Below are positions 13,667 through 58,620 of a DNA stretch of 64,000 nt, one piece after another. This DNA is from Nageia nagi (lineage: Eukaryota; Plantae; Pinophyta). Every line of letters begins with the position of its first letter. Position 1 is the stretch's first letter. The translations under genes and the position numbers were made by a program. The stretch is taken from positions 80,228,001 through 80,292,000 of the forward strand of contig JBITNC010000001.1 in assembly GCA_050084985.1 (NCBI GenBank), read 5' to 3'. Below the pieces are notes generated by a model. That model did no database searches, was not told the origin of the DNA, and saw nothing but the letters and a program-made list of their open reading frames with translations.

Positions 13667-16600
13667 ATCATAAGTAGTTGTGCTAAAACCCTAGGGTTTT
13701 AGTTAGGAATAATAAATAATTTTGTGAGTTGTTTTAGACATGGATCAGTCAAGAGTATTCTTGTGAAGTTTTTCAATAAGAAATCTTGATGAGCTCTTGG
13801 GAGATATTCAACATGATTGACCAAAAGTACCTAATGAAGAAGTTGAACATGATGATGGAAGTAATAATGATAACATTCAGGATACTATTGGGGGTATGCA
13901 AAGATAGATTAATCAATTAGAAAGAGGATTAGATTAGCTAGATAATTCAACTGAGTTTGGTAGTCCTCTATGTGATGAGATTCATGTATGCATGCCACCA
14001 CTAGATTATAAAGATTCCAAGTTTTATAAGTTCAATAGGGAAGGAGATCCTAGAATACATTTGTAAGGGTTTAAAGATGAGTGTGAGCTCAAAATTAGTA
14101 TGGATTCAAGATTACAAATGAAGTTATTTCCTCATAGTTTGGAAGGAGAGGCTCATGAATGGTTCTATTACCTACCTAAAAGGTTAGTTACATCATTTTG
14201 AGAATTGAGCAACTTATTTCTAGAATAGTATAAACATAATATCAAGCATAAAGTCATGGTTTCAGATCTATGTGCTATGAGGCAAGGTAGTAATGAGAAT
14301 CTTGAAAATTTTATTGTACAATTCAAGAAGACATGGCAACAAATCAAAATAAAGCTTACTAAAAAAGAGGCAAATAAAATTTTCAAGGATGCTATCATAT
14401 TTTCCTTACAATATTATGTCATTGATTATACACATCTAGCATTTTCTAATATGACATATAAGCTATTGGGATAAGAAAATGTCCTTGTGAAATTAGGGCT
14501 TGTGAAGTATTGAGACGATGACAAACCTAGGGCCAAAGATAAGTAGCCACAATCACCAAAGAAATATAAATCCATTCATGTGGTAGAAAAGGCAAATGAA
14601 AATAAAGAAAGGAAATTTATAAAGTTTCCTATACCTCCCAATTTTATCTTGAAATATCTAATGGCAAAAGGATTATTACAACCTTTACATGAGAGAGAGG
14701 AAGATGAAGTAGCAAAGAGGCTAGCATGGTACAAAGAAGACAAAAATTGCAAATATCATCAAACCAAAGGGCATGATACTAATGGGTGTGGAGGCCTAAG
14801 AAAAAAATACAAAGGCTTATAGAGGATGGATTCTATATTTTCCCTACTAAAGTTAAAGATATAGAGGAAGAGCAGCATGTCAATGTAATTTTCCATGAAG
14901 AAGTATGTGTAACACTTCCAAGAGGAAGATCAAGAGTAGCAACAAATCCTATTACATGTGAAAAAGAGCTTCTTAAAGATCCAATAAGTTTTGACCTCAT
15001 TGAGCAACTTAAGAAAACACAAGCTAAGGTTAGTTAGTTTGAATTAATTCAAATTTTAAAACAGTAGATAAATGATGAATCAAATTTTCAAGAATAGTCA
15101 AATAGATAGGAACATCTCAATCACTGCTTTTGCAAAAAATGTAGAAATATAGAGTAAAGGGGATGTTATTACTTTTCACCTTAGTGAAAGACCTAGCAAG
15201 GATGTGACCTGGTTACATCCGCCATTATTTATTGAAGTGAATATATTTGGTAATATAGTTAAAATATCATTGATAGATGGTGGGGAAGCTTTGAATATTA
15301 CCACCACTCACTTGCTTTCATAGTTTGATCTAGATTTGTTACCTCCAAGAGAAGAGACTACCATGAGAGTTAAGGGGTTTGATGGTGTTCCAAAGAAATG
15401 TGCAAGAATCATCACACTTCCAATCAAAGTGGGAAACAAGTTACTTTAGACCATCTTCTACATTATAGATGGAAAACCTTATTTTAAGTTTATTCTTGGA
15501 AGACCTTGGATACATGACATGGAAGGAGTAGCATCCACTTTGCATAGATGTTTAAAATTTTGTTCTGAAGGAAATGTTTACAAGGTAGAAGCAGATGAGT
15601 AGATAGCCAAGCAATGTAATTATGTTCTTACTAATATATTTATTTCATATGATGCAAAATATGAGGCTATCATAGCTAAGAATGATCAAATTTATAGAAA
15701 AACATTACAAAAAGTCAACATTAAGGGTATTGAATTTGGTTCATACACCATCACTAACATCAATAATATCAATCTAGAGAGAGATTTGGATGGATGATAG
15801 GAGGCTCAAGAAAAGGATTTCTCATGCTCCTCTAGGCTTCATAAAAACACCAATGGTCCTATTTAGAAGAAATCATAGAGAAAAACAAATATTGCATCAT
15901 TCCATATCATGGAGATGGTCATGATGGTTAGGTTAGTCATTCGTTATTAACACTAGAAGATGAACAGGTAAGAGAAGATCAAAATTGCTTTATTATTGAA
16001 TGTGAAATAGATGATGAATATGCAATACATGCTATAGAATTATTTTAGAATGATTATGCTTTCATAGAATCTATGGGTGCTAGAATTGAATATCCAACTA
16101 GGCATGGAAAGAGGACTCACAAACATTGTCTAGATGTGCATGCTTGCTTTGGTGAATCTATGGAAGATAAAATCAAAGGGTTGGGAGAGTTACCATTTCC
16201 CACACCATTAAAATTAGAAATGACTTGGTTGAATGAAGATATAGAGGAGGCCAACATTGGTTCTCAAGAGACATCGTAATTATTGAAAATGGGTAAGCTC
16301 CTTGAGGAACCTTTGCAAAATAAGTTGATTCAATCCTTTCATGATTATTCTAAATTATTTGCATGGTAATATAAAGATATGCTTGGATTAGATGAAAATT
16401 TTATAGTACATAACTTGGTTGTTGAGAAAGGAGCAGTTCCTATAAAGTGAAAACCAAGGAAGATGCCTTTTCATATTTCTTTACTAGGCAAGAAGGAAAT
16501 AGAGAAACTATTGGAAGTTGGTTTTATTAGACCCATTGATTATTCAGAGTGGATGGCCAATGTAATTCCAATAAAGAAACCCATAGGTGAAATTAGAGTA

Positions 16601-19600
16601 TGTACTAATTTTAGAGATCTCAATAAAGCATGTGTGAAAGATGACTTCCTACTATCCAACATAGATATGATCATTGACAATTTGGTAGGTTATGAGATGT
16701 TATCATTTACGGATGGATTTTTAGAATACAATCAAATCAAAATCAAGGAAAGTGATAAACATAAAATAGCCTTTAGAACTCCTTGGGTAACTTTTGCTAC
16801 AAGGTAATGCCATTTGGTCTTAAGAATGTAGGGGCCACATATCAAAGAGCAATGATAGCCATGTTTCATGACTTCATTCATAAAATAGTAGAGGTTTATG
16901 TAGATGATATCTTGATAAACTAAAAGAATAAATAAGATCATGTCAAGGATATAAAAGCTACATTTGAAAGGATTAAGAAGTACAAGTTAAGAATCAAGCC
17001 TTAAAAATGTGTATTTGGGATATCATCAAGAAAACTCTTGGGGCACATTATCTCTTGGAGAGGAGTTGAAGTGGATCCAAAGAAAATTAAAGCCATCACA
17101 AAAATGTCTCCTCCTACAAATCTTAAGCAATTGAGAAGCCTTCAAGGTAAAGATTCAAGCTATTATAAGATTTATTTGTCAATTAACAAATAATATAGCT
17201 CCTATGTCTCATTTACTTAAGAAAGAAGTTGAGTTTAAATGGGATGTTAAGTGTCAAGAAGCATTTGATAGAATAAAAGAGTATTTGTTACATCCATTGG
17301 TATTAGCTCCATATAGGCATGGAGAACCTCTTTTGCTTTATGTATTAGCTACAAAACATGCATTTGGGGTAATGTTGGAAAATAAGGAAGAATATGGTAA
17401 AGAGAGAGTAGTCTATTTTATTAACAGAACATTGAAAGAGTATGAAACTAGGTACACACCCATTAAGAAGTAATGTCAATGTATAGTATTTTCTACTAAG
17501 AGATTGAGGCATTATATGATCAATAACACAACACATGTACTTACTTAGGTAGACCCATTAAGATATTTGATGTCAAAATGGATCATGTTACTTTAGGATT
17601 TTGACCTCAAGTTTGTGAAACAAATATCAGTTAAAGGGTAGGAAGTCATAGACTTTGTTGCAGAGTTTCCCAAGGAGGATAGTACAAAACTTAGAGAAGA
17701 ATTTTAGGATGAATGTGCTTTGGAAAAAACCACAAAATGTGTAGAAGAGGATCACTTATAGCCTTCTTTTGAAGAAAATAGGAATGCTGATGTTCTTATT
17801 TTAGAGGTGTCAAAACATTGGAAAATGTATTTTGATAGATCATAGTGTATGCAAGGTTCAAGAGTAGGAATAGTGTTGATATCACATTAGAATGATGTTA
17901 TTCCCATGTCATATAAACTATCATTTGAATGCACTAACAATATGCCAAAATATGAAGCTCTCATATTAGTATTAATAGCAGCTATGGAGATTGGTATTAC
18001 ACATTTGCATATTTATGGGGATTCATAGCTGATAGTGAATCAAGTCAATGAGATCTATAACACCAAGGATGAAAAGGTTATTTCATATAAATTTCTTGTT
18101 ACAAAATGCCTTGCTTTCTTTGAATAATATTAATTAGATAATATTTCAAGGAATAATAACAGGTTGGCTGATGCAATGGCAAGTGTAGCTTCTCTTATAT
18201 CAATTGAGATAGAAAGTAGGGAGACTACTTTCACTATCAATAACTTGGGAACTCCATCATTTATTGAGGAGGACTTGAAAATGGTATGTGTTGCTCAAAA
18301 GGTTGGTCATGAGGTAAGTCCTTGGTACCAAAACATATTTAGATATTTGAGGGATGACATTATTGATGCTATGCTTGATAAGAGAGAATAGATTAGAATA
18401 AAAATGCTTGCTATAAAATATGTTATCATTGGTGATATACTTTATAAAAGATCATTTAATGGTATTGTTTTGAGTTGTCTTCATGATGAGGAGATTGAAA
18501 TAGTATTAGAGCATACTCAGAGAGGGGCATGTGGAGATCACTTCAACAGAAGATTAGTTTATGACAAATTGATTAGGATGGGTTATTGGTGGCCCACCAT
18601 GGAACATGATTATTATGAACATGTCAAGAAGTGTGAGCAATGTCAAAAGCATGCATACTTAGAATTAACACCTACTCAAGAGTTGAACTATGTTACATCA
18701 CCATGGCCTTTCTCAATGTGGGCTTTGGATTTCATAGGTGTTATCAATCCTCCATCTAGTGAGGGGTATAAGTTTATCTTGGTTGCCACCAAATACTACA
18801 CTAAATAGGTTGAGACAATTCCTTTGAAGATAGCTATACAAAAACATGTTATAAATTTCATCAAGGAATATATCATTTGCAGATTTGGCATACCTCAAAA
18901 GTTGATCATGGATAATGGTGCAAATTTTACAAGAAAATATATTAGAGAATTTTGTAAAAAAATGAAGGTTGAAGAGATGATTTTCTTCAATTTACCATCC
19001 CCAAGGGAATGGACAAGATAAAGCAACAAATAAGATAATCAAGAAGATATTGGTATAAACTATCAAAAAGAATGGTAGAGATTAGCATAAACAATTAACA
19101 TATGCCTTATGGGCATATAGAACAACTAAAAAAATAGCAACAGGTGCTACTCCATACTCTTTTGTGTATGGTGATAAATTAATCATTCCACTTGAAATTG
19201 AGATGCCTTCTTTGAGAATTGCACTCAAAGATATCATGAAGGGACCACAACAATGGGAAGCAAGATTAAATCAACTAGAGGCATTAAATGAGAAAAGAAT
19301 TAATGCACTAGAGCATCTTAAAACATATCAATAAAGAATAAAGAGGGCCTATGGAAAGAAAATGGTTCCCAAAGCATTTGAGGTTGGACATATGGTTCTC
19401 CAACAGAATGTTTCTAATACTACAGCAAAAGATGAACTTAAAGGAAAGGTTAAACCAAATTGGGTTGGTCCATACATCATCATAGAGGTCTTTGGTAGAG
19501 GTGCATATAGATTGTCTACATTCGATGTGGAGGTTATCAAAAATCCCATCAATGCTAGGCACTTAAATAAGTATCACATCTAGGAGACCTATGGGTCATC

Positions 19601-21412: not shown

Positions 21413-22929
21413 GTATTCACATGTTATTTTCCTTTTCCATCCTCTAATACAACATTTGTTTCTGATGTGGGCTGATTAGAAGTTTCTCCTTAATCAAATC
21501 CTATTCCAAATTTGATAATTGGATTTCTTTGCACTTTCAGTATTTCATCAAACTTTTGTGTACTTTTTGTAAATTTGATACTATTACTTGCTTCTAGAGA
21601 TAACTTCTCTATTTGTACCTTCAATGTGACTATTTTGTATTTATAATTATAACATGCATCAATCCTATTAGTAAGATTCATTTTCAAGGATTCTTTGGTC
21701 ACTTTAGCTTCTTTAATTTGAATACATATCCAACTTAACTCTTCTAGCTTCTTCGATAACCTTCTATTTTTCATCATTTATTTATCTAATTCTTCTAAAG
21801 TAGATATGAGTTCTCCTTATATGTCTACTTCAACCTCTTACTCTTTAGCTTTAAAATTTTCATCAACTTTAAGATTATCTTTATTATCTTCATGTGCCAT
21901 AAAAATAGTTCATTGCAATCACCTTCAAATTTATCATTATCACTAGATTCCTCTTCTTTCTCTTCTAATATGAAGCTCTTTTTCTTATGTGTATCTTTTT
22001 TAAAATTATTTGCTTTATTTTTATACCTATTATCATCTTTCTTACTAGCATTATCATTATTATCATTTCTCTCTTTATAAGGATACTTGCTAGCAAAATG
22101 ACCAACTCCTCCATAACTAAAACATTTGAAGGGTAGTTTACCTTTATCCTTACCTTGTCCTCTTATGAATTTTCAAAAAAAAAAATATTCTTTAAGATAT
22201 GATGTATCTTCTTCTTTATAGTATACTCTTACTTTGGTGCTTTTAGTTGCCTTGAACACTACTTCTCTATTTGATGATTTTCCTTTTACAGTCCTCATTT
22301 CCCAAGTTGTTAAGGATCCATACATTTCATCTAATAAAAATGCACTCACATATTTGGCCTCTTCAATAGCTAATACTAAGATTCAAACCTTTGTGGAAAG
22401 GATCTAATAACCTTCTTAATAATTACTTTATCTTGTATTTTTTCTCCTAATCCTTTGATTGAATTGATCATCTCCTTTACTCTTAAAATGCAAGTAGATA
22501 TATCTTATTCATCACTCATCTTCATACTTTGAAACTCATATATGAATGTTTGTAATTTGGCCTCCTTTATCTTGTCATCTCCTTTATATATACTTTGTAA
22601 TTCATTCCACATTTTTCTATGAGTCTTACATCCCATAATATTTATGAATTCATTATCAACTAAGCCACACATGACAACCTTCTTATATTTAGCTTCATTT
22701 TCAAATAGTTTCTTACTAGTTGGATCTGTTGGAGGTGTGGAGGGTATTGTATATCCATTTGATATAGCTTTCCATATATCTAATCCTAAGGCATAGAGAT
22801 AAATTTGCATTCTAAGCCTCTAGAAAGAATAATTTATCTCATCAAAAAGTGGTGCCTTGTTGAAGAGAAACCTTCTCCATTGGCCATTATGTTACTCCTT
22901 ATATCTTATTAATTTGAAAAAGAAAACTT

Positions 22930-30200: not shown

Positions 30201-32369
30201 TATTCACTTAATTTACATTGTGTCTAGAAAAAGGATTATTGAAAATTTCTAAATTTTGATTAAGTGGTTTAATTGGATTTTCTGTTAAGACTCATCAATT
30301 TTCAATAAGATCTTGGATATCATGTTTTAATTGCATGCACCCACTTTTGCTATGTCATCTTTGCCTATTGTATTCATAAAATTCATTTTCTTTGTCTAAG
30401 GTCTTGTTGATGCCATCGTAGTTTCTTTTATTTTAGGAAATGTTAAGATATTTGCTTGAATAACATTTTGCAATGCATCCAATATACGTTCTCCCAAGGG
30501 ATTAGCTTTTTTTTTGTAAAGGTTCTTCCTCATTAAGTTGACCTTTTCCCTTATCCTTAGTTGTTATGGAGGTTGTGTTGCTATGGCTAGTTGTATTTGA
30601 TTAACATTATAAGATAGTTAATTCTTATAGGGCTTTTAATATATTTTTTTATTTCCTCTATTATCCTTATGTTTTTGAGAATTTTTTTATTATTATTCTT
30701 ATCATTCTTCAAATGATTAGGAGTCATTCGGATGACCATAGGTGCACCCAAATATTTCTAAATAAAATGCAAAAATCATAAGTCTTGTGACAATAAAACC
30801 TACCCAAGTACAACATAAACCTATTAGGGGATTGTTTTCACCTAAGAACAAATAATAATCTAAACTAAAATACCAAAATTTGCTTCAAAATTAATAAAAT
30901 TACAAAAATAGGTAAAATCATCATGATACATAACGAATGGATAGCCATTCAAAAAAGTATGCAAAATTACTCTCCAAGTGTACAATTTATAAACAAGATT
31001 GGTTGGTTGTAAGATGATTTGGTTCAAATAATGATTTAGACTTTGAAACATCTAGATCTAGTATTGTACCCTACATGTAATCCTTTTTGCAAAATAGAGA
31101 CACAATGAGCCACTAGAGTTCACCAAAGAATGAGAAAATTCAAAATAAAAGAAACCACAAAAAATAAGTTGGAGGATTAGAAATGACCTTTTGTTCTTGA
31201 AAATTTAGGACCAACAAGGTCCCACTATGACTACCATTTTTGTAATGCCTAATTTCCTACCTATGAATCACTCAACATAATTTATGAACAAATCCAATAA
31301 ACTAACCATACAACTTAAGATTGGTCCCTATAATGTGATTAATAATGAATAAGGTAGGGATGGGAGATTAAGATAATTTTTCATTTTGTAGTTTGAGGGA
31401 TCAAGTAAGATCTAGGCAGACTTGCAAGAAAAAAAATGTTACCTAGGAAGCATCAATTATTAAATCCTTAAGACCTCGTTACCAATCAAGTAGGGAAAAA
31501 CCCTAGCACAAAAGAGAGAAAGCCTTCTTATCCATATTCAAATGGATAATAAAACATAGAAAGAATGCCTATTATTTAAAATGATACGCTCTTTTAACTA
31601 ATGTTCATACTATATGATGTTTTGATATGTTGAATGATATATATACTGAGAAATAGGATGGAAGATAAAATGATTCTTAATAAAACCTAGATTACGAGTA
31701 AATAAAACCCCGAGCATAAATCAAGAAAATGATCTAAAGCCAAATGATATGCTGGTAATAATAACCATTAGGGATCATTTTAGCCATGAATATTCACTAA
31801 TAAGTAAATTTTAGGAATTGCAAAATTGAAAAATGGTGAATTTTTTAGTTTAGAACAGTACCTATGTCGCTAAATTCTTTTATTATTATTATTTTGGGGC
31901 TGGGTCATGAAGTCAAAAATAAATTTTAAATTAAATTATTGTTAATTCACCAATATTTTTAAATAATAACTAACAAAATTTGCCTTGAAATTATAAATTA
32001 TTATTTATTTTTTGATTAAATTGCCCCATATAAATACCTTAATTAAAAAATAAATTTGATATATCCATTTTTATTCTCTTGGATAAATCTTCTTTGTGCA
32101 AGCATGTTAGAAAAGCCTACAGAATCTAAAAAGAGTTTGAATCTATGATAATTGGTAAGATCATATTTTTAATTTTATTATGTTTCATCATTTGAAATTC
32201 ACATCTATCTCTAGATTGTAGCAGATGTCTCTAAACAATCCATAATGCTTCAAATAGTGGCATATGTGACCACATAGTGGCATGTGTTTTAGATGCTATA
32301 ATTCTACCTTTAAAGGTACCAAGGTACTACTAATTGATGGCATTCTACTTCTAATTAGTGGTAAGTTGT

Positions 32370-32590
32370 TACTATCCTATGGCCTGCTATCATTCGATAG
32401 TAACCTACAACCATTTGGTAGCAACCTACAACCACTTAGTAGCAACTTACAACTATTTGGTAGCAACTTGCAACCATTTGGTAGAAACCTACAACCATTC
32501 GATAACAACTTGCTACCACATGGTTGCATACTAAACCAAGTGGTAGTAAAAATGCAACCGCATGATAGCAACCTTTATTGGATGGTAGCT
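32370..32590 (+). repeat. 21-bp quasi-palindromic tandem array, left part of the hAT
   Basis: About 10 units like GGTAGCAACCTACAACCATTT / GATAACAACTTGCTACCACAT. Confidence 0.88.
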
Positions 32591-32639
32591 GATTATTCAA
32601 CATGTATTAAATTTTTTATTCAAATGGTAATTACAAATT

Positions 32640-35300
32640 CTATGGACTCTAAGAATAGTAGTAAAGGGGATGAATAAAGGATATATTATCTTATTTTGCT
32701 AATGGACAATCACAAAATGAAAGTACTCATGAAGCATCTTCAATTGATATAGGTACTTTTCTTAGCTATTATTTTTAACATAAGACTTGAAATTCTAAAT
32801 TTATTAATTTCAATATATGGAAATACATTTTAATTATAATGATATACCACATAATAATAATCATGTTCCTCCTAATTTTGGTCCAATTAATAATAATGAT
32901 AATTTTTAATTTCAAAATGCTTAAAACCCTAATAATCATGTACCACCTAATTTTACTCTAATTGATGTACAACCACTTTTAGTTGAGTACCCTAAATATG
33001 GAACACCTTTACATGATGATAATTCTCCTAACCCTTCTATAGAAAAAATTTCACAAAATGTACAAATAAATCTACAAAAATAATAATGGAAATTTAAAAA
33101 GAAAACATAGTGCGAAATGGACTATTGGAAGAGTTTTTCAAGTTGATTGGGTAGCAACATATTCATTCATTGAACAAATTGATCCTAGTGATGGAAATAA
33201 TCCAACTGAGTGCAAAAGTAAAATATGTTTTTGAGAAACAAAAAGAGAACCTTGAATGCAATTGAAAATAGATACAATACAAAAACATTATGGTAAATTA
33301 TATTACAACAAAATAGATGAGAATGGATAGATAATTAAGTGCTGCAAGGATAAAATTGAAGATGAGTGTAATCACTTACGATATAAAGTATAATATAAAA
33401 GGTACATGAAAGAAAACTAAGATCTACAAGAAAAAGGTGGAACACTAGAAACACATTTTGAAAAAATTACTGATGCAAAAAGGTTAGCAAAATTTACTCA
33501 ATTTTGTACTATATTTTATATTCTTAAACAAGGTAGACCTATTGTAGATTTAATAAATTTTAAAAGTTTATATCAAAGAGTTGGATTACAGAATGTACCA
33601 AAAAAACATTGGTTAGAGACAAGTGCTTGGGAAATAGAAAAATATTTTTCGATGGTTAGGATTGAAAATTTAAAAAATAAAGTTAAAAACTCATAATTTA
33701 TTTCACTATCACTTGATGAATTTATAGCAGTGGACAATACTTTATGGGTTTGTATGCATGTATACACTTTTTAGAATAATTATAGAACACCACATCTATT
33801 GAATGTTCATAAAATGGATGAAAATTATAATGCAAAAAATCTTTACAAGTTAGTTATTTCTAACTTAAAAGATTTTTTTGGAATGTATGATTATGAAATT
33901 GATGCAAAATTGATATGTGTTGGAGTAGATGGTGCATAAGTAATGCAAGGTAATCAAAATGATCTTTGTGTTAGATTATAGACTTTGGTAGCTCCTTATA
34001 TGATTCCCATTCATTGTATGGTACATTGAATGAACCTTGTATATAGAATTCTTAGCACTTTTATAAGTGTATCAAAAGTGGAAGATGTTATTCATGATTT
34101 GCATGCATAGATTGCAAGAAGCCCAAAAAGATATAGAGAGTTTAAAAATTACTTTTTTGGAATAATTGATGGAAATAAAATTTTAAATTATAATGATACA
34201 AGATGGATTTTATCATATGAACCAATAAAAAGAGTTTTTATTGAATATCCCTCTTTAATTGGTCTTATGTATGAACACTGTAATGTGATTGATAAAGCAA
34301 AAGATTTACTATTCCATTTAACAGGTTTTCAAATATTATTGACTTTATGTATAATTATTCCAATGTTATAAGATATCAATACTTTAATGAAACATGCTTA
34401 AGAAAGATCTATATGCATATTTGATTTCATGTCTTTGAGAAAATAAGTATCTTTATCTTTGGATATGCTTTATACAAGTCCAAACAATTTTAAAGGTCCT
34501 CTATTTCAAAGATGGAAAATTTTGACAAATGTTAAACATCCAAATAATTTTTTGAAATTTAACATCAATGATCATCTTTGTATATAGGTGAAAGGAAAGT
34601 TGATACCATTACATGTTCAAAATATGAGAAGGGATTTGGTTGGAGTAAAATATGAAGATGAACCTATAAATCATCTTCTTTTTTTTATAATTGTATTTAT
34701 GAAACACATGTTAATTTCATAAAGATTTGTGCCTTAACCAATAAAATCCATGAACAATTTCAAAGAGATGATTTACTTGAATCTATGGTAGTTTTGAATC
34801 CCAAATTTTGGAATACAGATAATGGTGAACAATTAATTCATGATTTATTTCATAAATACATGGTAATTCTTGGAACACATTTTGGTAAAATTGTAGAAAT
34901 AAATGGATAAAACATTAATGATATTTTAATTAAAGAGTCATTGACAACACAAGCCATCCATTTTGGACTTGCTATGATTGAGAAATACTCTCTATTATTA
35001 GAACCAATAGAAAATGGTGCCATTAAATGTCTTTGGGTGAAACTTAATCCAAGTTCTTATCTTCAAGGTAATATTAGTGAGTATTTTAGGTTATATGAAT
35101 TGTGTCAAATAATAATTTTGGGTTCTATTGAATATTAAAGGGTATTTAATGCTTTATCTTTATTAAATCTAAGATTCAAAATAAATTAGACAAAAGCTTG
35201 GATACATGTATTAGGTTATATGTTTCTTCTTATGCTCAAGATTCTTTTTTGATGTAAAGGGCAATGGATCATTGGTTTTCTGCTACATAATGGAGAGGTG
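32640..35300 (+). pseudogene. hAT transposase (ZNF862/TTF zinc-finger type), decayed
   Basis: RVFQVDW..CKSKIC..KH zinc-finger region (~33130-33290); FISLSLDE (~33700-33720); CVGVDGA*VMQG (~33915-33950); IHCMVH (CxxH, ~34010); DTRW (~34195); C-terminal LGSIEY*RVF dimerisation motif (~35120). Multiple stops and frameshifts. Confidence 0.9.
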
Positions 35301-35639
35301 TAGACAATTGTGAAGAAAATATTCCAACAAAAAATTCCATGCCAACAATAAAAAATTAGAACAAAATAAGTTGTTGAAGGGTTTGAATTTGAAATACCTG
35401 AATAAAACATTTTGTTGAAGGGTTTAAATTTCAAATACTTATAATATTGGATCTTAGATTCTAAAATTTGCTTTGCTAATCAAATTTGTTTCATGTTATT
35501 GTTGACTTATAATTTTAATTAGTATATTTTTTTTCTATGTATGTTATTGTTTAATTTAAATTCAATTAGTATATTTGTATTTTTTTCTAAAATATTTCTT
35601 ACTTGTTATTATTTCCAAATCAACATAAATTTGAATAAC

Positions 35640-36330
35640 TATATAAATTTTAACAAATATAACATTCAACCATAACATTTCAAAGAATCAAATATAACAT
35701 AAGCATAACATTTCTAATATAAAAACAAAATCATAACATTTTAAATATTAAAATAAACTTAACATTTCAAATATAACATATAACATTTCAAATAAATGTA
35801 ACCATAACATTTCAAAAAAAACACAACCATATAACACTTCAAATAAGCATAACCATAACATTCAACTAGAAAATTCAATTACAACATAAATTTGAAATAT
35901 AAGATAACCATTACATAAATTTCAAAGATAATAAAATATAACCATAAAAACTATCAATGTAGTCTAAATCAAACTAGTCTTAACAATAACATAACCATTC
36001 AAATAAGTAGAACCATAACATTGAACTAGAAAATTCAATTACAACATAAATTTGAAATATAATATGACCATCACATAAATTTCAAAGATAGCATAACCAT
36101 CAACGTATTGTAAATGTAAAATAACATAACCATCAAAGTATTCTAAATCAAACATAACCATAGAAAATATCAATGTAGTCTAAACAAAATAGTCTTAACA
36201 ATAACACTAGAAACCATCCAAGTAGTCTAGCAAAAACCATCAAAGTAGTCCAATAGAAAACCATTAAAGTAGTCCAATAGAAACCATCAAAGTAGTCCAA
36301 TAGAAATCATTAAAGTACTAAAAAGTATTA
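35640..36330 (+). repeat. Repeat-rich spacer between the two convergent hAT genes
   Basis: Many AACCATAACATTTCAAA-like motifs; a ~90-bp block repeated at 35841 and 36001; about five 23-24-bp units AGAAACCATCAAAGTAGTCCAAT at ~36208-36318. Confidence 0.8.
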
Positions 36331-36341
36331 AAAGTATCAAA

Positions 36342-39256
36342 TCAATCTAATATTCCTCCCCCTTCTCTTCCTCCTGAACCCTCTAGCTCATCTGATGAAA
36401 GATCGATAAGATCAACAGCTTCAGTAAGATTGAATAATATATTCTTATCTAATGTAGATCCATTATTTGATGAAAGCAAACTTAGATCCATAGTATTTTT
36501 TTCTTTCCATAAGATATTTGGATCAAGTTTATGCTCCTTAATTGTCATTATATAAGCATTATTCATTTTCTTCAATTGGGCCATTTCATCCTTCATTTGA
36601 ATGGCTATTGTGACACTTTTTTTTGTAATTTTCAAATAAATTTTAAACATTTGAACATATTTTAACAATTTATCATACCTATCATACAATCAAATAATAA
36701 TACATAAATCATAAACATGGATATGAAAATATTTTCAAAATATAAACATAAAATATGTAAACATTGAAAGTAAGAAAGCAAATTGTTACCTCAGCTTGTT
36801 CCTTTTTCATCTTCACAATCTCTACCAAATTTTAATCTCTTGACCAAATTTCATAGTAAGCTTGGGCCTCTACATTTAAATTTTCCAAATGGTTACACAT
36901 AATACCTATAATGTTATCATTATATTCACATTGAACATTGACTGAACTTGCTTGTACTTGAGTCATCAAACTTTCTATTTTAGCAAGTTCATTCTCAATC
37001 AATTTGTACAAAGAATTACATTGAGAATGATTATGATAATGGGTATTAATTTCCTTTATCAATGCTTTGTCCCATACTTCCTATGTCTTTAAAATATTGA
37101 CTTTATCTAGGACAACATCATTCAGCTATGCCAATGTAGCATCTAAAACAAGTGTATTCAATGGAAAGTAGGTGAATTCATTTTTCATTTTACCAATAGT
37201 GTCATCCACATTTTGTGAAGGTGTTGTAGTACTTTTTTATTGTGAATGAAAAATAATAACTTGAATCTAACTGATATCATGGGTGTTCAACTATGGATTT
37301 GAACTAGTATCCATCCCTAAATAATCCACATCCAAAGGAAAGTTTCATAAAGCAAGAATACCAACACTTTGTACATCATCCAAATGTATATAAAAAAAGA
37401 AGACATTATTGATAAGTTCACTATTATGTGGCTTATGGAAGGAGCATCTTGTTGTATATTCAAATTTTTTCATGCTCTTCTTATGGAGATTGGAAGTGCA
37501 ATAGGAGGAAGAGTAGGCATGGGTGACCTCCTTTTTTGAGAACTAGATCTGCCACCTATATAAATTTTTTTTAATTATGAAATATGAATTCATTTTTATG
37601 GGATAACAAGTTTATATAAAACAAAATCCAAAACTAGTTACCTGATGGAGGTGTAGTGGATGTAGTTTGAAATGGCTGATTAGGTGAATCTGGAATATCT
37701 TGATCTTCAACTGTGATAACTTAAATAGAAACTAAATGAAAAATTAAAAATATTTAGTATCTATTTATAGACTAAAAGTCAATGTTAAAAATATATAAAT
37801 ATATCACACACATTTTTGTTCATACATCAATAGAATGCTACCACACAAAAATAGAATGCTATCTTGTAACCATATGGTAGTAGGTTGCTACCATGCAATT
37901 GCATCCTACTACCATACATTAGTAAAGTTTAATAAAAAAGATAAAAATAACAAATTTACTATATTACCTCCATTTGTTACATTTTCATCGAAGGATTTTC
38001 TTCTTTAACCACAAAATTTGAATGCCTATCAAGAAAGCTTGTCCTAGGAATAACAACATTTCCTTCTCCTACAACCATAACAATATGTTTAAAATTTAAA
38101 ATAATATAAATAATTTAATAAAAAAATATTAATTAAAATGTAAAATACCCATATTCATTAAACATTTACAAATGGCAGGAGGTGATGCATTCCTTGTCCT
38201 CCTTGTAGAGGATCATCTTAATATTAATGGACTTGAAGTGTTTGTAGACTCATTATCACTAACACCTTCTAGATGAACTCCTCTTAGTGTTTCTTCCCTT
38301 TTCTTTGATGTATTTTTCTATGAGATGCTGAAAAAATATAATTTAGTTAATATTCATAAAATTTTAAACATTCAAACATGTCAACTTAAAATCAAAAATA
38401 AATTTGATTTCTAAATACTTTGATTTCCTTAGTTGATAATGCTAGAGCTATCATTTACAAATCCAATATCATAGGAATTGGAGCTGTATTGATAGCATTA
38501 TGAAAAGCTTCATAATAAAGAGTTAAAATGTAATTTGCACATGATATAAAACTACTATCATTTTGAATGGTAAAAGACACATCATATTTATTTTTGTTTG
38601 AAATATATGAACACTAATCAAATTTTTGACCACTCAACAAACATAGGATGTAAACTATAGACCATAATGGAATGTTTGACATTCTACCTTGTAAAATAAT
38701 TATGGACTAAAAATTCACAATTGCTTTGAAGTAGTGATGGGGGGAGTTTTAGTAACCTATTCCTCTTTGTTTCGATATTTTGCACAAAAAAGATGGAAGT
38801 GATTAATCAATTAACTTTTAGTTATACATTAATATATAAAATTAATTAAAATGAAATTTGAAAAATAACTTACACATTATCGATTTGGATGTGGTAAGTT
38901 TCCTCTAAATACCTTTTGTCTTCTCCAGACAATAGAGCTTTAGAGGTAACTTGGCATTCATCATCACCATGATGTGGTAAATTAGTAAATGACTAATGTT
39001 TGTAACAAAAACTCCAAAGGAAAAGCTTCTTGATTTTGTAAACACATAAAACCTTGCTTCCTTGATATCATAAATGGCCATAAGATAGTCCTAGTAAATT
39101 TGTATCTATTTCAAATTGCAGCATAAAAGAGCCCTCTAAACCTTGTCTAGTCCACCCATTCTGAGTAATATTATGGGGTGAAATAAGATAAAGTACTAGG
39201 GCATGATATATTCTTATAGGAAAATTGATAGTTGGTGGATGATGAAGGTGGGACAT
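36342..39256 (-). pseudogene. Second, intron-containing gene inside the hAT; unknown protein with a coiled-coil-like C-terminus
   Basis: ORF pieces 39068-39256, 36832-37062 and 36342-36689, plus coding-like blocks between short AT-rich introns. Minus-strand splice sites: GT|GTAAGT (38873), TTTTCAG| (38328), TTGTAG| (~38070), GAG|GTAATA (~37967), CAG|GTAACT (~37641), TATAG| (~37556), GAG|GTAACA (~36789). Internal stops are present. Confidence 0.75.
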
Positions 39257-39559
39257 GGTTATAAAAAAGTAAAAACTATGGCTAAAGGTAAAATATTATA
39301 GGAAAAAGCAATGAAATGATAACTCTAACAAGTCAAATTATCTAAAACTACCACTAAAATATTACTTAGTGAAAAAGAAAAGCACATGGCATCTAGTTAT
39401 AGGCTAGAGAAAGGATTTGGGAGGAAAAGAGAGCTCTAGACAAGTGGGGAAAATGATAGAATGAAGAAAATGAGTCATGTAATGTGCATATATAGGTAAT
39501 TCACATGTGGTCCTTGATTTGGAAGTTAAAATGTGGGGGATTTGGTGGAATTGTATAGG

Positions 39560-39865
39560 TTTGCTACAGCAAAAGTTTGCTATCATGTAGACTACTATCG
39601 TACGATGATAAAATGCTACCGTATGATGGTAAGCTACTTCCATATGGTAGCAAGATGTTGTTGTGCAGTAGCAAGCTACTATCATGCAATAGAATACTAT
39701 TGTATGATGATAGACTACTATCTTATAATGGTAAGCTACTTCCATGTGGTAGCAAGTTGTTGTTGTGTGGTAGCAAGCTGTGATCTGCGATAGCAGACTG
39801 CTACTACCCAATAGCAATCTCTTACCATGTGGTAGTAGAAGCTAGCCTAATACCACCTGACGGTA
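39560..39865 (+). repeat. 21-bp quasi-palindromic tandem array, right part of the hAT
   Basis: About 14 units like GGTAGCAAGCTACTACCATGT, the same motif family as 32370-32590. They produce the spurious ORFs at 39404-39817, 39533-39793 and 39577-39783. Confidence 0.88.
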
Positions 39866-41029
39866 GTCTATTATTCCTTTCATCTAATTCACCAAAAAAA
39901 TTATACTTTTTTTTAGTAAATTCAAATTCTCCTTTATGTTTTAGAATTTTTAATTTAAAATCATCTCTACTATGAATCTAATTCACTTCAAATTTTCCAA
40001 GTTAGTTTTAAAAAAGGGCTCTTAAAATGATCTTTGATAACCATGATATCAAATAATTATAGCTCAAATAGATCATCAAATTAAATGATATGGGTATGCA
40101 AGAATACCAAAATTCTAACATGAAACCATAGGATGATATTAGTCTAAATATACCTATATGCCATAAAAATGATATAAATAAGCAAATCTATATTGATTGA
40201 AGGGATATAATTCTCCACTTTAGATGCAAGATGTAACCTAAATTTATCAAAAACTATACAAAATCAAGAATTAATGATACCAAATCTCAAAGGAATAAAA
40301 CTTACCTCAATCTTCACATGTTAAAGTGAAATTTGAAGATTGGAAGGTGAATATCCATGGTGTCAATAGTTTGTTGTCACACTTAAAAGATGTTAGATCT
40401 TATCAACTCAAATCTTTGGATAAAGTGAAAATCCCCAAAACATAGTCTACATATTTTATTTATAGAAAAGACAATTATAGTTGTATAAATGACTATGAGG
40501 TCATTATGATTTTTTGAACAATTATGCAATCATTCAGATGATTAGGTTATGTGTTAGAATCTTTTTTATGCCTAACATTTTTTATTTTTTATATATATCT
40601 TTCTATCTTCTCTTACCAATATATGTTTTTGGGTTGTTTACCACAAATCAAGAAGGAATATCAATATAGGTTTATCAATTAAGCAAATTATTATACCATT
40701 TATGCCCATAAAACTAGAAAATAGATTCCTTTGGTGATTGCAAGCCAAGTCAAAGGATTCATTAATACAAGTAAAAAGTTGATACTATTTATGGTCAGAG
40801 TTTTTAGTCAAACTATTACCATAAAAGGAATGCCAATTGTCCTATATGAATGAATTATATTTTCTATAAAAAGATGAATAAATACCATGCTATTATTTTT
40901 CCTATAGATAAGATTGGAAGAAGACATATAATAAAAAATTCCATGAAGGAATTAGGATCAAGATGTCTTGTAATAAATTCTGATTTAAGTTCTAAGTTTT
41001 AGAGGAGATGTATTGTAATGGAGAGCAAT

Positions 41030-45890: not shown

Positions 45891-46600
45891 TAACCGCCTT
45901 CGTTACCTGTGTAAAGGATGGTAAACAGCCCGAGATCTGTATGAGAAAAGAAGCCGCCTCGTTTATTGAATTTCCGTCAGAAGTATAGTGATTAATACGC
46001 ATATAGGACATGCGGTTTTGGAATTCAGAGACATAAAAATGCTCGACGTCCAATTCAAGGACTACAAGAATGATTTTGGTGATTGTTCGTGCGAGATCTG
46101 CCAACAGGATCGTATACGTTGTAATAGTTTTGCTGAAACCCGATAGGAAGACTGCATTAGTTTTGTACTTGTATTAGAAGAAGATTACATGAGCATCGGA
46201 AAACAACATACCAGAATAGTGGATTTCCGTGTTGTGGCCATATTTTACTGCATATTTGAAACAATGAGTCTGAATGAGGTGGGTTGTGGATGCAGAAGCT
46301 CTTATAGACATTGTTGATGAAATAGCTATCAATGGGGTGTTCTGTGGCGGATCTTTGCTTGGCCTCCGCGGGCATGGCACATAGTTGTTGGAGGACTGAA
46401 TCTACGTCTTGAAGAAGAGTATCTGGAATTCCATGGTTGACAACTCTGAAAAATCCCCATTCTTGGCAAGCATTTTTCACTTTGGCAATGACCTCGTGAT
46501 AGTGGGCATCATGAGTTGTTTGTGCGAATGGTGAAAGGTCAATGAGAGGGAGAGCGGCTTCGAGACCAAGATCAGGGGAATTCTGCTGCGAGAACGGCAT
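45891..46600 (-). pseudogene. 2-oxoglutarate/Fe(II)-dependent dioxygenase (DOXC, GA20ox-like), frameshifted and 3'-truncated
   Basis: Exon 1 46600-46212 encodes DIOX_N (LPLIDLS..ACQEWGFFRVVNHGIP). A 79-bp GT-AG intron spans 46211-46133. Exon 2 from 46132 reads CKTITTY..MRINHY. The Fe-binding SHTDLGLFTILY..EGG lies one base out of frame after ~45952, and homology stops at ~45891, before the distal His and RxS motifs. Confidence 0.9.
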
Positions 46601-47083
46601 GGTGGAAGAACTTTGGAAGGCAGATGACAGCCAAAAGATATGTAAAACGGCAGAAAGTATCACAAGAATACAGCACACGATGAACGTGGCCGGCAGTGGT
46701 GGGGTTTGTTATTAAAAAGCTAAGATAGTGTGACGGGTATCGAGGTGGAATGTTCTGAGCTGTGTTGGATAATCGAACAAGACAAATGACGACTTCCGGA
46801 AGGAATACCACCGTTAAAAGGGGCGAGGCGTGAGCCTAGAATCTATTATAGTAGGAGCTCCACCTATAAACCCTACTATATAATAGCTCTTCCCGGTCTT
46901 AGGGTTGGCGGTGTCTGAATGCCGAACATGTGATATGGGAACGGCACATAGGTTTATTGGTTAATGATGTTCGGTGCTTAGTATAGCCTCATCTTATATA
47001 ATAGTCTCACGATCATGTGTGTAAGTATAAAATTCTAAAATTGGAATAATGTTGTAATCTCTTTTAATAAGAAGATTGATTTT

Positions 47084-54186: not shown

Positions 54187-57100
54187 TGTTGAACTATGTG
54201 TGACATTGAGAGGGGGAGTAAATTAGTGTACCCTAATACTTAACACAAAATAAAAAAATTAAACTCAAAATAATCACACAAATTGCACCACACAACACAA
54301 GATTTATAGTGGAAACTTAATGTGGGGAAAAACACTCTTCAAAGGACTATTTGGACTCCCATTGAAATCCAGTCTCAAAAGTATGGTTGAATTTTACAAT
54401 ATTTTTATAGCACCAACTACAAGGAGCACCAACCTTGGAATTTAGCAACACTTACTTCAAGGAACACCAACCCCTGTTGACAAGCACCAACTTAAAAAAT
54501 CTAAAATTCTCTAATAAAAATTATAAATCTTGTCACAAGACCATGAGTAGTCTAGTTTATAAAATCTTCTTCTCTAAAATCTTGTCATAGTCTACACACT
54601 GATAATCATGCTTCATACATACTGATAAATCCAAACATACTATCTAAAAACTCATTTTGAACACACCCAAAACAAAAACCCTTTATTCAACCAAAACCCT
54701 TTTCTTGCAACTCAATCAAAACCCTCCTCTGCAACCTGCAAATAAAAACTCCACCCCAAAGAAATGTAAAATTCTCAAATATTTTTGTAACTAAAAAAGT
54801 AGGAAAAAAGAGCTCTAAAGGTATTTTTGAAGAGCCATAACTTTTTACTAATTAAACCATTTAAATCAAAATTTGGACCACATATTCTCCATATAATCAA
54901 ATACATTATGTAAACATTTTAAGGTCTACATCCTTATATTTTTTACATAGCACTTCTTAAAAAATATCCTCCGATGAAGATTTGCAAACATTTCGTTAAA
55001 TAGTTTGCATAACAAGTCTGGAAAAAATAGAAAAAAATGATCTTAGACCTATTTTTTGAAAGCCATAACTTTTTATTATGAATAGTTTGCATAACAAGTC
55101 TGGTATATTCATCTATGATCACCATGAATTTCATTATCCAAGTCCTCTTGGATAGCATTTTGTCAAACACTTCATATGCTTAGTTTTGTGCCTATTAGAG
55201 ATTCTCATACTTTAGGACCTCAAATTGAGATGATTCAAAATATAAAGTTACTCATCTCACCAAGTTATACATGTACAAAATTTGAAATTCTAAATTTGAA
55301 GACTTCGAGACCCCAAAACAACCATCCAACTATTCCATGACTTGCCAAAATTCGTGCTTAGAATTGGGAAAAGTTATAAAGTGGCATTTTATAGCTTGTA
55401 CTATTTTTGCTTTGATTATTGGATTGATCTAAAATTTGTACCAAATATTCTTTGTATATATTAATATATTTATTTTAAATTTTATACTCTGAATCATCAC
55501 TGTTTACTCGCAATTTGACTTGTACAAAGCCAATTTCACCCAAATTTTTTAACTATTCCAAAATCCATAATAGTTCATGAAACCAAAATATCATGGAATT
55601 TGATGATTCCAATGTTGCACACAACTTTTTTTATCATCCCAAAAACTTATCCAAACCATCTTTGGCTTTTTATCACCTTTCTTTTGCATTTTGGCCCCCT
55701 TGACAGCTTTTGGTACCTCGTGACAACTTTGTCCCTTTGTTGTTTTTGCATTCGATAACTTTGCAAATCTTGTTGATGTCATTTATTTGACATGTGCAAC
55801 CATGGAAACCATATGCATAGTGATCTCATCATGTTGATAATAATGACAACACCGTTACACCATACTCAACAATCTCTTCCTTTGGAATTATTAGCAACAC
55901 AAATGCAAAAACCTATTACTCTTCTCCCCCTATGACAAAAAATACAAAAGGGTGCCTTGGACTCCCCCTGAGTCCATACACACAATACTTAGGTGTAAAT
56001 TATACAAGAGAAAAAAGATAATAAAGTACAAAATTACTCCCCCTAATATTGTGCACCCAAAAACTATTTTATTGCCTAGGCAATGTCACCACTCATAATT
56101 TCTTTCATAGGTACTCAAAAACATCCTTGGGTAATGGTTTAATGAAGATATTTACTACTTGCTCTGATTTGAGAACAAATTCCAAATTTATCTCTTCTTC
56201 TACAATATTTTCCTTCAAAAAATGGTACCAAATGGTAATGTATTTTGTTATTGAATGCATGATCAGATTCTTGGAAATATTGATTGCACTTGTATTATCA
56301 CACATAACTAAAATGGATTCAATGATCTAAATACCTAGATCCTTAATCATTTATTTCATCTACAAAATATGTATAAAGCATGATGTCATTGTTATGTACT
56401 TTATTTCCATTATGGACAATGATGACAATTCCTATTTATTGATATACCAACTAACAAGATTATTGCCCAAGTAAAATGCACCACCATTGGTGCTCTTCAT
56501 ATCATATACACACCCTTCCTAATCAGCATCTAAGAAAGCAATGAGTGTGAAATCCTTCCCCTTGGGATACCATAGGCCATAGTCTAATGTACCTTTGAGG
56601 TGCCAAAAAATTTACTTTAGTACAATCACATGCATCTCCTTTGGATTTAGCTGAAATCATGCAACCATGAACACTTCTTGAAGTATGTCAAGTCTATTAG
56701 CTATCAAATATAATAAGCTCCCAATCATTGACCTATACATAGTCTGATCCATTGATAGGGACTTATCATCCTTGCTAAGCTTGCAATCTATTTTCATAGG
56801 AGTGCTAACAAGCTTGAAATCCTCCATAGTGAACTTTTTCAGCATCTCCTTACATACTTGATTTGTGAAATAAAAATTCCATACTTCAACTGATTAACTT
56901 GCAAACTAAGAAAATATAAAATTTCACCTATCATTGATATCTCAAACTTTGTTTGCATTTGGTTAATAAAATCTTTGCACATTTCATCCTTACTACCTTC
57001 AAAAATAATATCATCAACATAAACCACAATGATAACTTGATAATTATTTTCAAATTTAATGTAGAGATTACTATCCATCATACCCTTTTTGAAACCCATT

Positions 57101-58620
57101 GATAAAGATATGCATCAAGCTAGAGTACCATGCCTAGGATGCCTATTTTAGACCATAAAGTGATTTTTTTAATTTGCACATAAAATCTAAGTTTTTACTT
57201 ATTTGAAATTCATATGGTTGCTCAATGTAGACTTCCTCCTCAATATTTCCATTAAAAAATGCTAATTTTGCATGCATATGATAAACCTTATAGTTCTTAT
57301 ACACTGCCAAAGCAAGAAACATGTAGATAGCCTCTAATCCATCTACATGAGTAAAGGTTTCTTCAAAATCAATACCTTCAACCTAAGCATACCCTTTGTA
57401 AACCAAACTTGCTTTGTTTCTTATCACTTTCCCATCTTCATTAAGCTTTTTGGAAAAAACCCACTTGGTGCCAATCACATTTTTGTTCTTGGACCTTTGT
57501 ACCAACTTCCAAGTCTAATTATTTTCAATCTACTCTAACTCCTCATACATTGCCTTGATCTAACTCTCATCCTAACTTACCTCTGCAACATTCTTTGGTT
57601 CTATACTTGAAATAAGGGATTACATTCTTATTGTTCTTTCGTATGAACTCCACTACTCGGGTTTCCAATTATTTGATCATTTGGATGATCCTTTTGCCAT
57701 TCACCTATTTTATGTTTTTGATTTTTCTCCATATCTAAATCACTATGTGATTCACTAGAGACATTCTTTGATTGCTTTTTTGGTTATTCGTCCACCTCAT
57801 CTACCTCAATGTATTCTTGATAAATCAAAAATATTTCATCATCATCTTTTGAAGGTATTCTCATCTTATCAATCTTGACATTTGCACTCTCAATAATTTT
57901 TGTGAGTATTTTATTGTAACACTTATAAGTCTTGATTTTTTTTTAGTAACCAAGGAATATACCTTCATCCATTCTATTATCAAATTTGCCAAGATTTAAT
58001 TCCATCTTCTTGATGTAGCACTTACTCCCAAATACTTTGAAGTATCTTTTTGATGCCTTTTTTTTGAACCATAACTCATAAGGTGTATTACTCTCATGAG
58101 GTCTCAACATACACATTTTCTAAATATAAACCATTGTGTGGAATTATTTCCAAATCCTATTAGCTATGTTGCTTTCTATAAGCATTATTCATGCACTTTC
58201 TTAAACTAACTTGTTCTTTCTTTCCACCACACCATTTTGTTGAGGTGTCCTTGCTGTAGGAAATTATCTCCTAATATCATACTTGTGATAAAACTCATTA
58301 AAATCATTTGAAATAAACTCACCTCCTCTATCTGATCTCAAACATTTGATCCTCCTCCTAACCTAATTTTTTGTTTGGTTCTTAAAGGTCTTAAATTTTT
58401 TAAGTGCTTCTAACTTGTGTTTCAAAAACAATATCCATGTCATCCTAGAATAATTATCTATGCATAACATGAAGTACTTATCTTCATTTATACTTTGCAT
58501 CCTCATAAGACAACATAAATTAGTATGAAAAAGCTATAGGAATTTGCTAGAATAATACTCCTTTGTCTTGAAAGTGGATCTGGTGAGCTTACCCTATTGA
58601 CATGAAGAATAAATATTTCT
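54187..58620 (-). mobile_element. Second Sirevirus-like Ty1/copia, 5'-truncated (INT-RT-RH-3' LTR)
   Basis: Integrase CLRSDRGGEF and TPQQNGVVERKN (57900-58600); RT VIGTKWVF and VVYVDDII (56650-57600); RH CDNTSAI..KPLPKD (56105-56305). PPT at 55872-55885. LTR 54187-55871 has TGAGAGGGGG 20 bp from its end, as in the LTR at 22944. Confidence 0.9.

Follow-up and report, generated by a model that had tools for sequence, protein, structure and literature searches.

The window analysed here is a stretch of 64,000 nucleotides from Nageia nagi (Pinophyta; contig JBITNC010000001.1 of assembly GCA_050084985.1, positions 80,228,001 to 80,292,000 of the forward strand), and it contains a mobile element of 8,268 bp at 31769-40036. 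The unit is one complete, long-dead insertion of the hAT superfamily in an AT-rich, CpG-depleted genome: the window has 28.8% G+C and a CpG observed-to-expected ratio (o/e) of 0.12, and the element has 27.4% G+C and a ratio of 0.11. Inside it, a transposase gene on the plus strand converges with a second gene on the minus strand (39256-36342), called gene 2 below, for which eight candidate exons (E1 to E8) and seven introns can be drawn. This anatomy, two convergent genes bounded by terminal inverted repeats (TIRs) and target-site duplications (TSDs), is the one that a first-pass annotation of the letters alone had proposed. Absent from that annotation is the point that both genes are pseudogenes in this copy, with at least 12 in-frame stops in gene 2. 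A dead copy is evidence about a lineage, not about a working system, and it is one data point. Even so, it is probable that gene 2 was borne by the element and formerly coded for a protein, which would make this a two-gene hAT; that the family carried two convergent genes between its ends, a transposase and a spliced gene 2, has been demonstrated in part.

The ends of the unit have the features by which hAT elements are recognised, namely an 8-bp TSD, short TIRs (10-25 bp, with a YARNG start) and subterminal repeats inside both ends. The TSD, ATAACCAT, fits what we take to be the Ac-type pattern, nTnnnnAn. Of the 14 positions compared between the left and right TIRs, 11 agree and the other three differ by transitions, as would be expected from deamination of an ancestral CAGGGATCATTTTA.

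The membership of gene 2 in the element is best seen in a second copy. JGI metagenome contig Ga0068628_1015030 (2,233 bp; L001 below), recovered by one metagenome scan, is collinear with positions 37011-34429 of the window. It runs from within E7 through the last intron, E8 and the spacer between the two genes into about 830 bp of the transposase tail, which lies on the opposite strand. Nucleotide identity is 81-86% in the exons, the spacer and the transposase tail (86% in E8) and 91% in the intron, and the spacer differs in length (387 gap columns). L001 has decayed independently while keeping the same tail-to-tail layout, so gene 2 recurs with the transposase in another copy; the first-pass annotation had named confinement of the gene to this copy as an outcome that would sink its proposal, and the recurrence bearing on this covers one further copy, in the 3' halves of the genes only. 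A second such outcome was that gene 2 might have ends of its own, and the repeat search found no TIR, TSD or long terminal repeat (LTR) bracketing it.

The comparison of the two copies also indicates what their ancestor looked like. The last intron has four insertion or deletion events in 106 bp; the compared part of E7 has none, and E8 has one, beside the stop codon. The two copies have no in-frame stop in common apart from a TAG at 35187-35189 in the transposase tail. The window TAA at 36832-36834, for example, is AAA in L001 and lysine in two more distant relatives described below (P0002 and P0009), and a TGA of L001 is TGG in the window. Since the stops are private, the common ancestor had the compared parts (part of E7, E8 and most of the transposase tail) open. 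As for the shared TAG, the transposase of the ancestor may already have been truncated, or the change may have arisen twice.

Beyond L001, relatives of gene 2 are few and fragmentary. One relative of E8 from an ENA assembly (P0001) has 76% identity, and one of E7 from a Logan assembly (P0002) has 68%. A HMMER profile of E8, searched against 1.84 billion representatives, retrieved only nine proteins: five fragments of close or intermediate similarity, from JGI/IMG and Logan, and four hypothetical proteins of Taxus chinensis, the last with E values of 2e-7 to 3e-6 against the whole library. The most conserved stretch of all relatives, NN..(I/T)IKEH.LDP.IL.K, includes the E8 motif IKEHxLDPxIL. 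The Taxus proteins are the closest named relatives found (31-45% identity). They (KAH9326984.1, KAH9311201.1, KAH9290624.1 and KAH9331555.1) come from four different contigs of 0.68-1.05 Gb and are known as proteins alone; their gene models are labelled 'partial' and start inside E7, so they define no 5' end. A handful of fragmentary matches and four Taxus contigs together make a dispersed multi-copy pattern, not that of an ordinary conserved host gene. Two points here favour the first-pass annotation: gene 2 matches no ordinary host gene, there being no annotated full-length homologue among the 1.84 billion representatives searched with the last-exon profile and no Pfam family, and it has long resided in its lineage, as the distance of the Taxus relatives suggests. 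Conservation with Taxus at the level of the protein sequence argues for past constraint.

One Taxus protein bears directly on splicing. Residues 1-55 of P0009 (174 amino acids) align with 36957-36793 in E7 at 45% identity and residues 58-150 with 36680-36405 in E8 at 31%. The protein skips 36792-36681, an intron of about 110 bp, which is thereby supported independently of the reading frames. Where about six short introns had been proposed, seven are counted here, and the independent support extends to the last of them only. Among the other relatives, the Taxus model P0010 (KAH9331555.1) fuses Aminotran_4, the C-terminus of a class IV aminotransferase, to a gene 2 tail; this chimera is an annotation artefact caused by the gene 2 family, of the sort that arises when transposon debris is swept into gene predictions. 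A 20,065-bp JGI/IMG contig (P0011) and a 3,005-bp Logan contig (P0008) carry further gene 2 tails and have the length to hold an entire element or its neighbours.

The C-terminal part of the protein had been described as coiled-coil-like, and structure prediction agrees. An AlphaFold2 model of P0009, made with eight aligned relatives, contains one unbroken helix of 93 residues (14-106), with a predicted local distance difference test score (pLDDT) of up to 94, followed by two short helices; a Foldseek search with the helix model gave no match at E<=0.001, as expected for a single helix. It has been established in part that the last ~260 residues of gene 2 make up one long alpha-helix or a coiled coil and that other copies and Taxus have conserved this portion, the fold itself being a prediction. 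About 20 pieces of gene 2, taken in all plausible frames, matched no Pfam family at E<=1 or at E<=10, though the pieces are short (30-115 amino acids) and a very remote relation is possible. In particular, the PMD-like identity once raised as a check drew no support, with no match to PF10536 (PMD) or to DUF1985 (PF09331) at E<=10, and no Pfam match linked the gene 2 pieces to the TnpA proteins of CACTA elements (Transposase_24), to the Myb-like open reading frame of Harbinger elements or to helix-turn-helix (HTH) domains. The whole of gene 2, as read from its candidate exons, would encode some 680 residues, comprising an orphan N-terminal domain of about 260, a basic, Ser/Pro-rich linker of nuclear appearance, and the helix.

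Features of the element and of gene 2, in window coordinates (coordinates in descending order are read on the minus strand)
Feature	Position	Strand	Remarks
Left TSD copy, ATAACCAT	31761-31768		read directly; identical (8/8) to 40037-40044
Left TIR, TAGGGATCATTTTA	31769-31782	+	
Left subterminal array	32371-32575		~21-bp dyad-symmetric units, consensus CATTTGGTAGCAACCTACAAC; repeat search, Tandem Repeats Finder
hAT-type transposase pseudogene	~32817-35252	+	start tentative; motifs read by eye
Tandem-repeat spacer between the two 3' ends	35600-36333		units of 23, 26-29 and 160 bp
E8, last exon with stop codon	36342-36683	-	113 codons open; tail VDLIDLSSDE
E7	36790-37231	-	helical region; 5' boundary tentative; 3 in-frame stops
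E6	~37400-37555	-	tentative; from GT/AG sites and frames
E5	37642-37719	-	tentative; from GT/AG sites and frames
Internal motif cluster	37828-37925		intron 4 of gene 2, stop-rich gap between E4 and E5
E4	37968-38068	-	tentative; from GT/AG sites and frames
E3	38170-38327	-	tentative; from GT/AG sites and frames
E2	38423-38786	-	candidate exon; both boundaries uncertain
E1	38874-39256	-	candidate exon; ATG at 39256, donor GTAAGT at 38873
Right subterminal array	39588-39800		core CCATATGGTAGCAAG; repeat search, Tandem Repeats Finder
Right TIR, CAAAGATCATTTTA	40036-40023	-	read inward (reverse complement)
Right TSD copy, ATAACCAT	40037-40044		read directly and confirmed by script

The element is further marked by arrays of a short motif, and these are real and element-specific. 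The 64-kb window has ten TGGTAGCA sites against 0.97 expected, eight of which lie inside the element in three clusters (32416-32518, 37836-37893 and 39645-39775). The left subterminal array (21-bp period, 5.2 copies, 84% matches in Tandem Repeats Finder) stops some 240 bp short of the putative transposase ATG at 32817. The right array, which has a 102-bp period comprising about five degenerate units of 21 bp (Tandem Repeats Finder score 293), is situated some 330 bp upstream of the ATG of gene 2 at 39256. In the repeat search the right repeat proved to be 87% complementary to the left one. The internal cluster lies in a region with stops in all frames and holds two TGGTAGCA sites together with an exact GGTAGCAAC at 37884-37892. 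Arrays of one family just upstream of each gene, and a recurrence of their motif within an intron of gene 2, were both part of the earlier description, and both were found. The units are dyad-symmetric, and their core resembles GCTACCATATGGTAGC. CpGs persist in a few of them (TACCGTATGATGG and ATCGTACGAT), from which it follows that the ancestral 21-bp unit probably carried CpGs.

The transposase is badly damaged. Its frame changes at least twice (near 33080 and 34720), so that it reads in two or three frames, and it contains about 18 in-frame stops, 15 of them in 33070-34719 and three more in the tail. Its blocks nevertheless follow one another in an order that we take to be that of established hAT descriptions, an eye reading rather than the output of a tool: RVFQVDW...C..C, which is zinc-finger-like, then SLSLDEF, VGVDGA*VMQG, HCMVH*MNL, DTRWILSY and IEY*RVF (asterisks are stops). 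Many of the stops fall where relatives have Q, R or W (DGA*VMQG, HCMVH*MNL, and ING* against INGQ in L001), a pattern characteristic of C>T and G>A decay. At 62200-64000 the minus strand carries a second pseudogene of a hAT-type transposase, truncated by the end of the window. Its amino acid identity to the first is about 48%, and the motifs LDEF, VDGA.VMQG, HC/QCMV..(M/L)N(L/I), DTRWI and E.ERV(F/L) occur in both. A tandem array follows its 3' end (61441-61890), and just beyond lie Ty1/copia remnants on the minus strand at 56100-58600 (RVT_2 at 56842-57382, integrase-like frames to 58533); the copia element may have disrupted or replaced the distal part of this second hAT.

The exon model of gene 2 draws on stop depletion and splice sites. 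In-frame stops number 2 in 128 codons of E1, 4 in 129 of E2, 3 in 148 of E7 and none in 113 of E8, against a background of 7.7%; E1 and E2 together thus have six stops in 257 codons, where about ten would be expected in each exon. E3 to E6 read as a basic middle region rich in S, T, P and R, as in RRTRNASPP and QKRRSPMPTLPP. The last intron has the donor GAG/GTAACA (36790/36789) and, as its sole AG acceptor, GATAG/G (36679/36678). Open-frame length, considered as a further line of evidence for gene 2, was rejected: frames of 115 codons are reached in 7% of shuffles of the element, and the arrays alone yield spurious frames of 135 and 145 codons.

Several results weigh against a two-gene hAT or call for caution, and they touch the ends, the transposase and gene 2 in turn. 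Pairs of the kind that bounds the element (a perfect 8-bp direct repeat with an 11/14 inverted pair, 2-20 kb apart) occur 13 times across the window, and 10.7 are expected in first-order Markov sequences built from its base transitions, so that the pair taken alone would carry little weight. It is credible because of its position, a pair no more than 1 kb outside both motif arrays having a chance probability of about 0.013, and because of its hAT-typical YAG start and a TSD that fits nTnnnnAn. For the transposase, Pfam hmmscan with 15 stop-free transposase pieces, in sets of eight and seven, found no hAT family even at E<=1, the profiles concerned being PF05699 (C-terminal dimerisation) and PF14291 (ZnF-TTF/DUF4371 type); neighbouring retroelement fragments of 80-110 amino acids, which served as a control, were recognised. 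Searches of the PDB by phmmer and hmmsearch, with transposase pieces and a two-copy profile, gave no match, and the AlphaFold2 model of the longest stop-free piece (134 residues) had a pLDDT of 50 and was unusable for structure search. The assignment of the transposase to hAT is accordingly one of end structure and of motifs read by eye. In addition, tblastx over the 8 kb past the 3' end of the second transposase found no gene 2 relative.

Within gene 2, length gives no help, since the 115-codon frame is not significant in itself, and the stop depletion of E3 to E6, which are too short, is indistinguishable from chance. The N-terminal half (E1 and E2) found no relative in a word search, in the collection scans, in Pfam or in the ESM Atlas, and it is tied to E7 and E8 by strand and order alone. 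In the Atlas, two pieces were searched and nothing rose above noise level; the scans of metagenome, viral and genome collections, run with the N-terminal pieces, a transposase piece and the gene 2 tail alignment, returned no match. The three-part protein of the first-pass annotation has therefore fared unevenly, its C-terminus being borne out by the AlphaFold2 helix, its middle exons being indistinguishable from chance and its N-terminal half standing without relatives. The canonical GT..AG of the last intron also shifts the frame by one or two bases, in the window and in L001 (222-340) alike; either the real junction is a different one, or a small lesion was already present in the common ancestor of the copies. 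Nor is there a clear mark of selection. The ratio of nonsynonymous to synonymous substitution (dN/dS, NG86) between the window and L001 is 0.33-0.43, and a permutation that keeps the mutational spectrum gives p = 0.06 for the synonymous excess in gene 2 and 0.6 in the transposase, none of it significant; the two copies diverged essentially neutrally. A separate idea, that the N-terminus of gene 2 is a rearranged piece of transposase, was discarded when tblastx against the rest of the window gave no match.

The most serious rival follows from these points. It holds that E7 and E8 alone were the gene of the element, encoding at most about 260 residues that form mostly one long helix, and that E1 to E6 are non-coding or remnants, and we give it a minority share of belief that is large enough to matter. 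Every relative covers E7 and/or E8 only. Pfam, the Atlas, the word search and both collection scans yielded no relative for the N-terminal pieces, and stop depletion in the middle exons does not exceed chance. What this rival leaves to be explained is the low stop count of E1 and E2, together with the way E1 is edged by an ATG and a GTAAGT. The silence of the relatives upstream of E7 is also less telling than it looks, as the 'partial' Taxus models leave the 5' end undefined and decayed pieces of 30-60 residues give little search power.

A gene of the host could also have found its way into the element. Plant DNA transposons do take up host fragments, a process established for Pack-MULEs. Such capture has also been reported for superfamilies other than the Mutator-like one (PMC2528002). 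On this account a host gene or fragment was captured once by the hAT (transduplication) and carried passively, with no role for the element, and the neutral divergence of the window and L001 would suit it. However, the matches consist entirely of fragments and of Taxus models labelled 'hypothetical, partial', the latter spread over four contigs and including one chimera (P0010), and relatives spanning 31-76% identity point to long persistence in many copies. Gene 2 moreover has its own upstream array and an intron with the motif of the element. Capture of an ordinary host gene is unlikely.

The unit might also be a composite, in which an ancestral hAT received an unrelated mobile element or gene downstream of its transposase and the whole was then mobilised. 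The spacer between the genes is indeed a variable block of tandem repeats, and the second hAT of the window has no gene 2 beside it. Yet nothing with ends of its own was found around gene 2, L001 shows the identical order of transposase tail, spacer and gene 2 tail, and the motif of the element occurs both in the gene 2 intron and beyond the gene 2 5' end. Any nesting would predate the family and would in practice equal a two-gene element; a nested foreign element is, in any case, decidedly unlikely. Finally, the notion that there is no second gene at all, and that the minus-strand frames are chance openings in AT-rich repeat DNA, can appeal to the long frames of shuffled and array sequences, but it is effectively refuted for E7-E8 by Taxus matches at E = 2e-7 to 3e-6, one of which joins two exons across the intron; the concentration of insertions and deletions in that intron also speaks against it.

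If gene 2 was the second gene of a hAT, its product might have been an oligomerising nuclear cofactor of the element. Such a protein would bind the palindromic ~21-bp units upstream of both genes and in the intron, or the transposase bound there, and would help to pair the ends and/or keep both element promoters active, as TnpA does in En/Spm and VANC in VANDAL21. The suggestion draws on the long, presumably dimerising helix, the basic Ser/Pro-rich linker and the placement of the units, and by analogy with those systems it is offered as a tentative possibility, more doubtful than not, the more so as the 21-bp units could equally be ordinary binding sites of the hAT transposase. Bolder and rather improbable is the notion of an ancient hAT lineage, common to gnetophyte-like and conifer genomes, that depends on a dedicated coiled-coil regulator; this would recognise the palindromic, CpG-containing ~21-bp units upstream of both genes and in the intron, and would be a counterpart of VANC and TnpA in countering silencing that arose independently from an orphan protein.

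To our knowledge, hAT is the textbook single-gene cut-and-paste superfamily, its well-known members (Ac, Tam3, Tag1 and Tip100) encoding a transposase only. Mutator, CACTA, Harbinger and Transib/RAG elements do have known partner genes, several of which are regulators that counter host silencing. The ends of Ac start CAGGGATGAAA and TAGGGATGAAA, and the element described here resembles Ac/Ds and the plant hATs in its 8-bp TSD, its short YAGGGAT-type TIRs, and the subterminal repeat clusters inside both ends; to judge by the eye reading, its transposase would also share the CxxH, RW and ERVF-type blocks and their customary order. It is unlike them in its additional convergent multi-exon gene, of about 2.9 kb, and in the third motif cluster within that gene. 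The papers searched yielded no account of a hAT element that has a second gene. In a 2025 survey of active plant TIR elements, accessory proteins come up for Mutator-like elements (MULEs) only (PMC12973397).

In layout the closest parallels lie outside hAT. ProtoRAG, a Transib-related element, is bounded by TIRs and holds tail-to-tail genes for a RAG1-like protein and a RAG2-like one, the latter a non-catalytic partner of the transposase. It shares with the present unit two tail-to-tail genes in a TIR-bounded DNA transposon, but it is an animal element with a 5-bp TSD and another transposase family, and its RAG2L consists of kelch repeats instead of being helical. MuDR (mudrA/MURA and mudrB/MURB) likewise has two convergent genes, each starting just inside an end. 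MURB, a lineage-restricted protein in which no domain is recognisable, binds the transposase at its N-terminus (PMC12973397). MuDR differs in belonging to the Mutator superfamily, in its 9-bp TSD and ~200-bp TIRs, and in having no sequence similarity to the element.

Two further systems are of interest for what the gene 2 product may have done. In En/Spm, a CACTA element, TnpA dimerises, binds subterminal repeats at both ends, promotes transposition and reactivates the silenced element, and it is a plausible model for a coiled-coil protein acting with palindromic subterminal units. En/Spm is unlike the present element in that alternative splicing of a single transcription unit gives rise to both TnpA and TnpD, whereas the genes here are convergent, and gene 2 has no Transposase_24 or HTH signal. 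VANDAL21 (Hiun; VANA and VANC) is a TIR element with an extra gene and with short motif arrays both upstream of genes and in introns, arrays that are the binding sites of the anti-silencing accessory protein VANC. A preprint gives context for this system (bioRxiv 10.64898/2026.08.24.746577). It differs in that it belongs to the Mutator-like superfamily, in the absence of any DUF1985/PMD signal from gene 2, and in that gene 2 is known here from sequence alone.

Should the two-gene reading be correct, a hAT lineage that kept gene 2, in this genome and in Taxus, would represent a fourth plant superfamily with a partner gene. It would also supply a new domain-less protein together with a candidate DNA target, the 21-bp palindromic units. 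For annotation, the family explains a class of 'hypothetical, partial' or chimeric gymnosperm gene models, of which Taxus KAH9331555.1 is an example.

The surroundings of the element are dense in transposons. Decayed Ty1/copia sequences (SH3_retrovirus, RVT_2 and Retrotran_gag_2) occur at 10759-11530 and 22508-22819, and decayed Ty3/gypsy pieces with RT_RNaseH_2 (RNase H) and Integrase_H2C2 occur within 16451-18805. On the minus strand at 46160-46708 there is a frame of 183 open codons that matches DIOX_N, the N-terminus of 2OG-dioxygenases, at E = 1.7e-18. With 45% G+C and a CpG o/e of 0.62 it is unlike the DNA around it, and it probably belongs, as one exon, to a live host gene.

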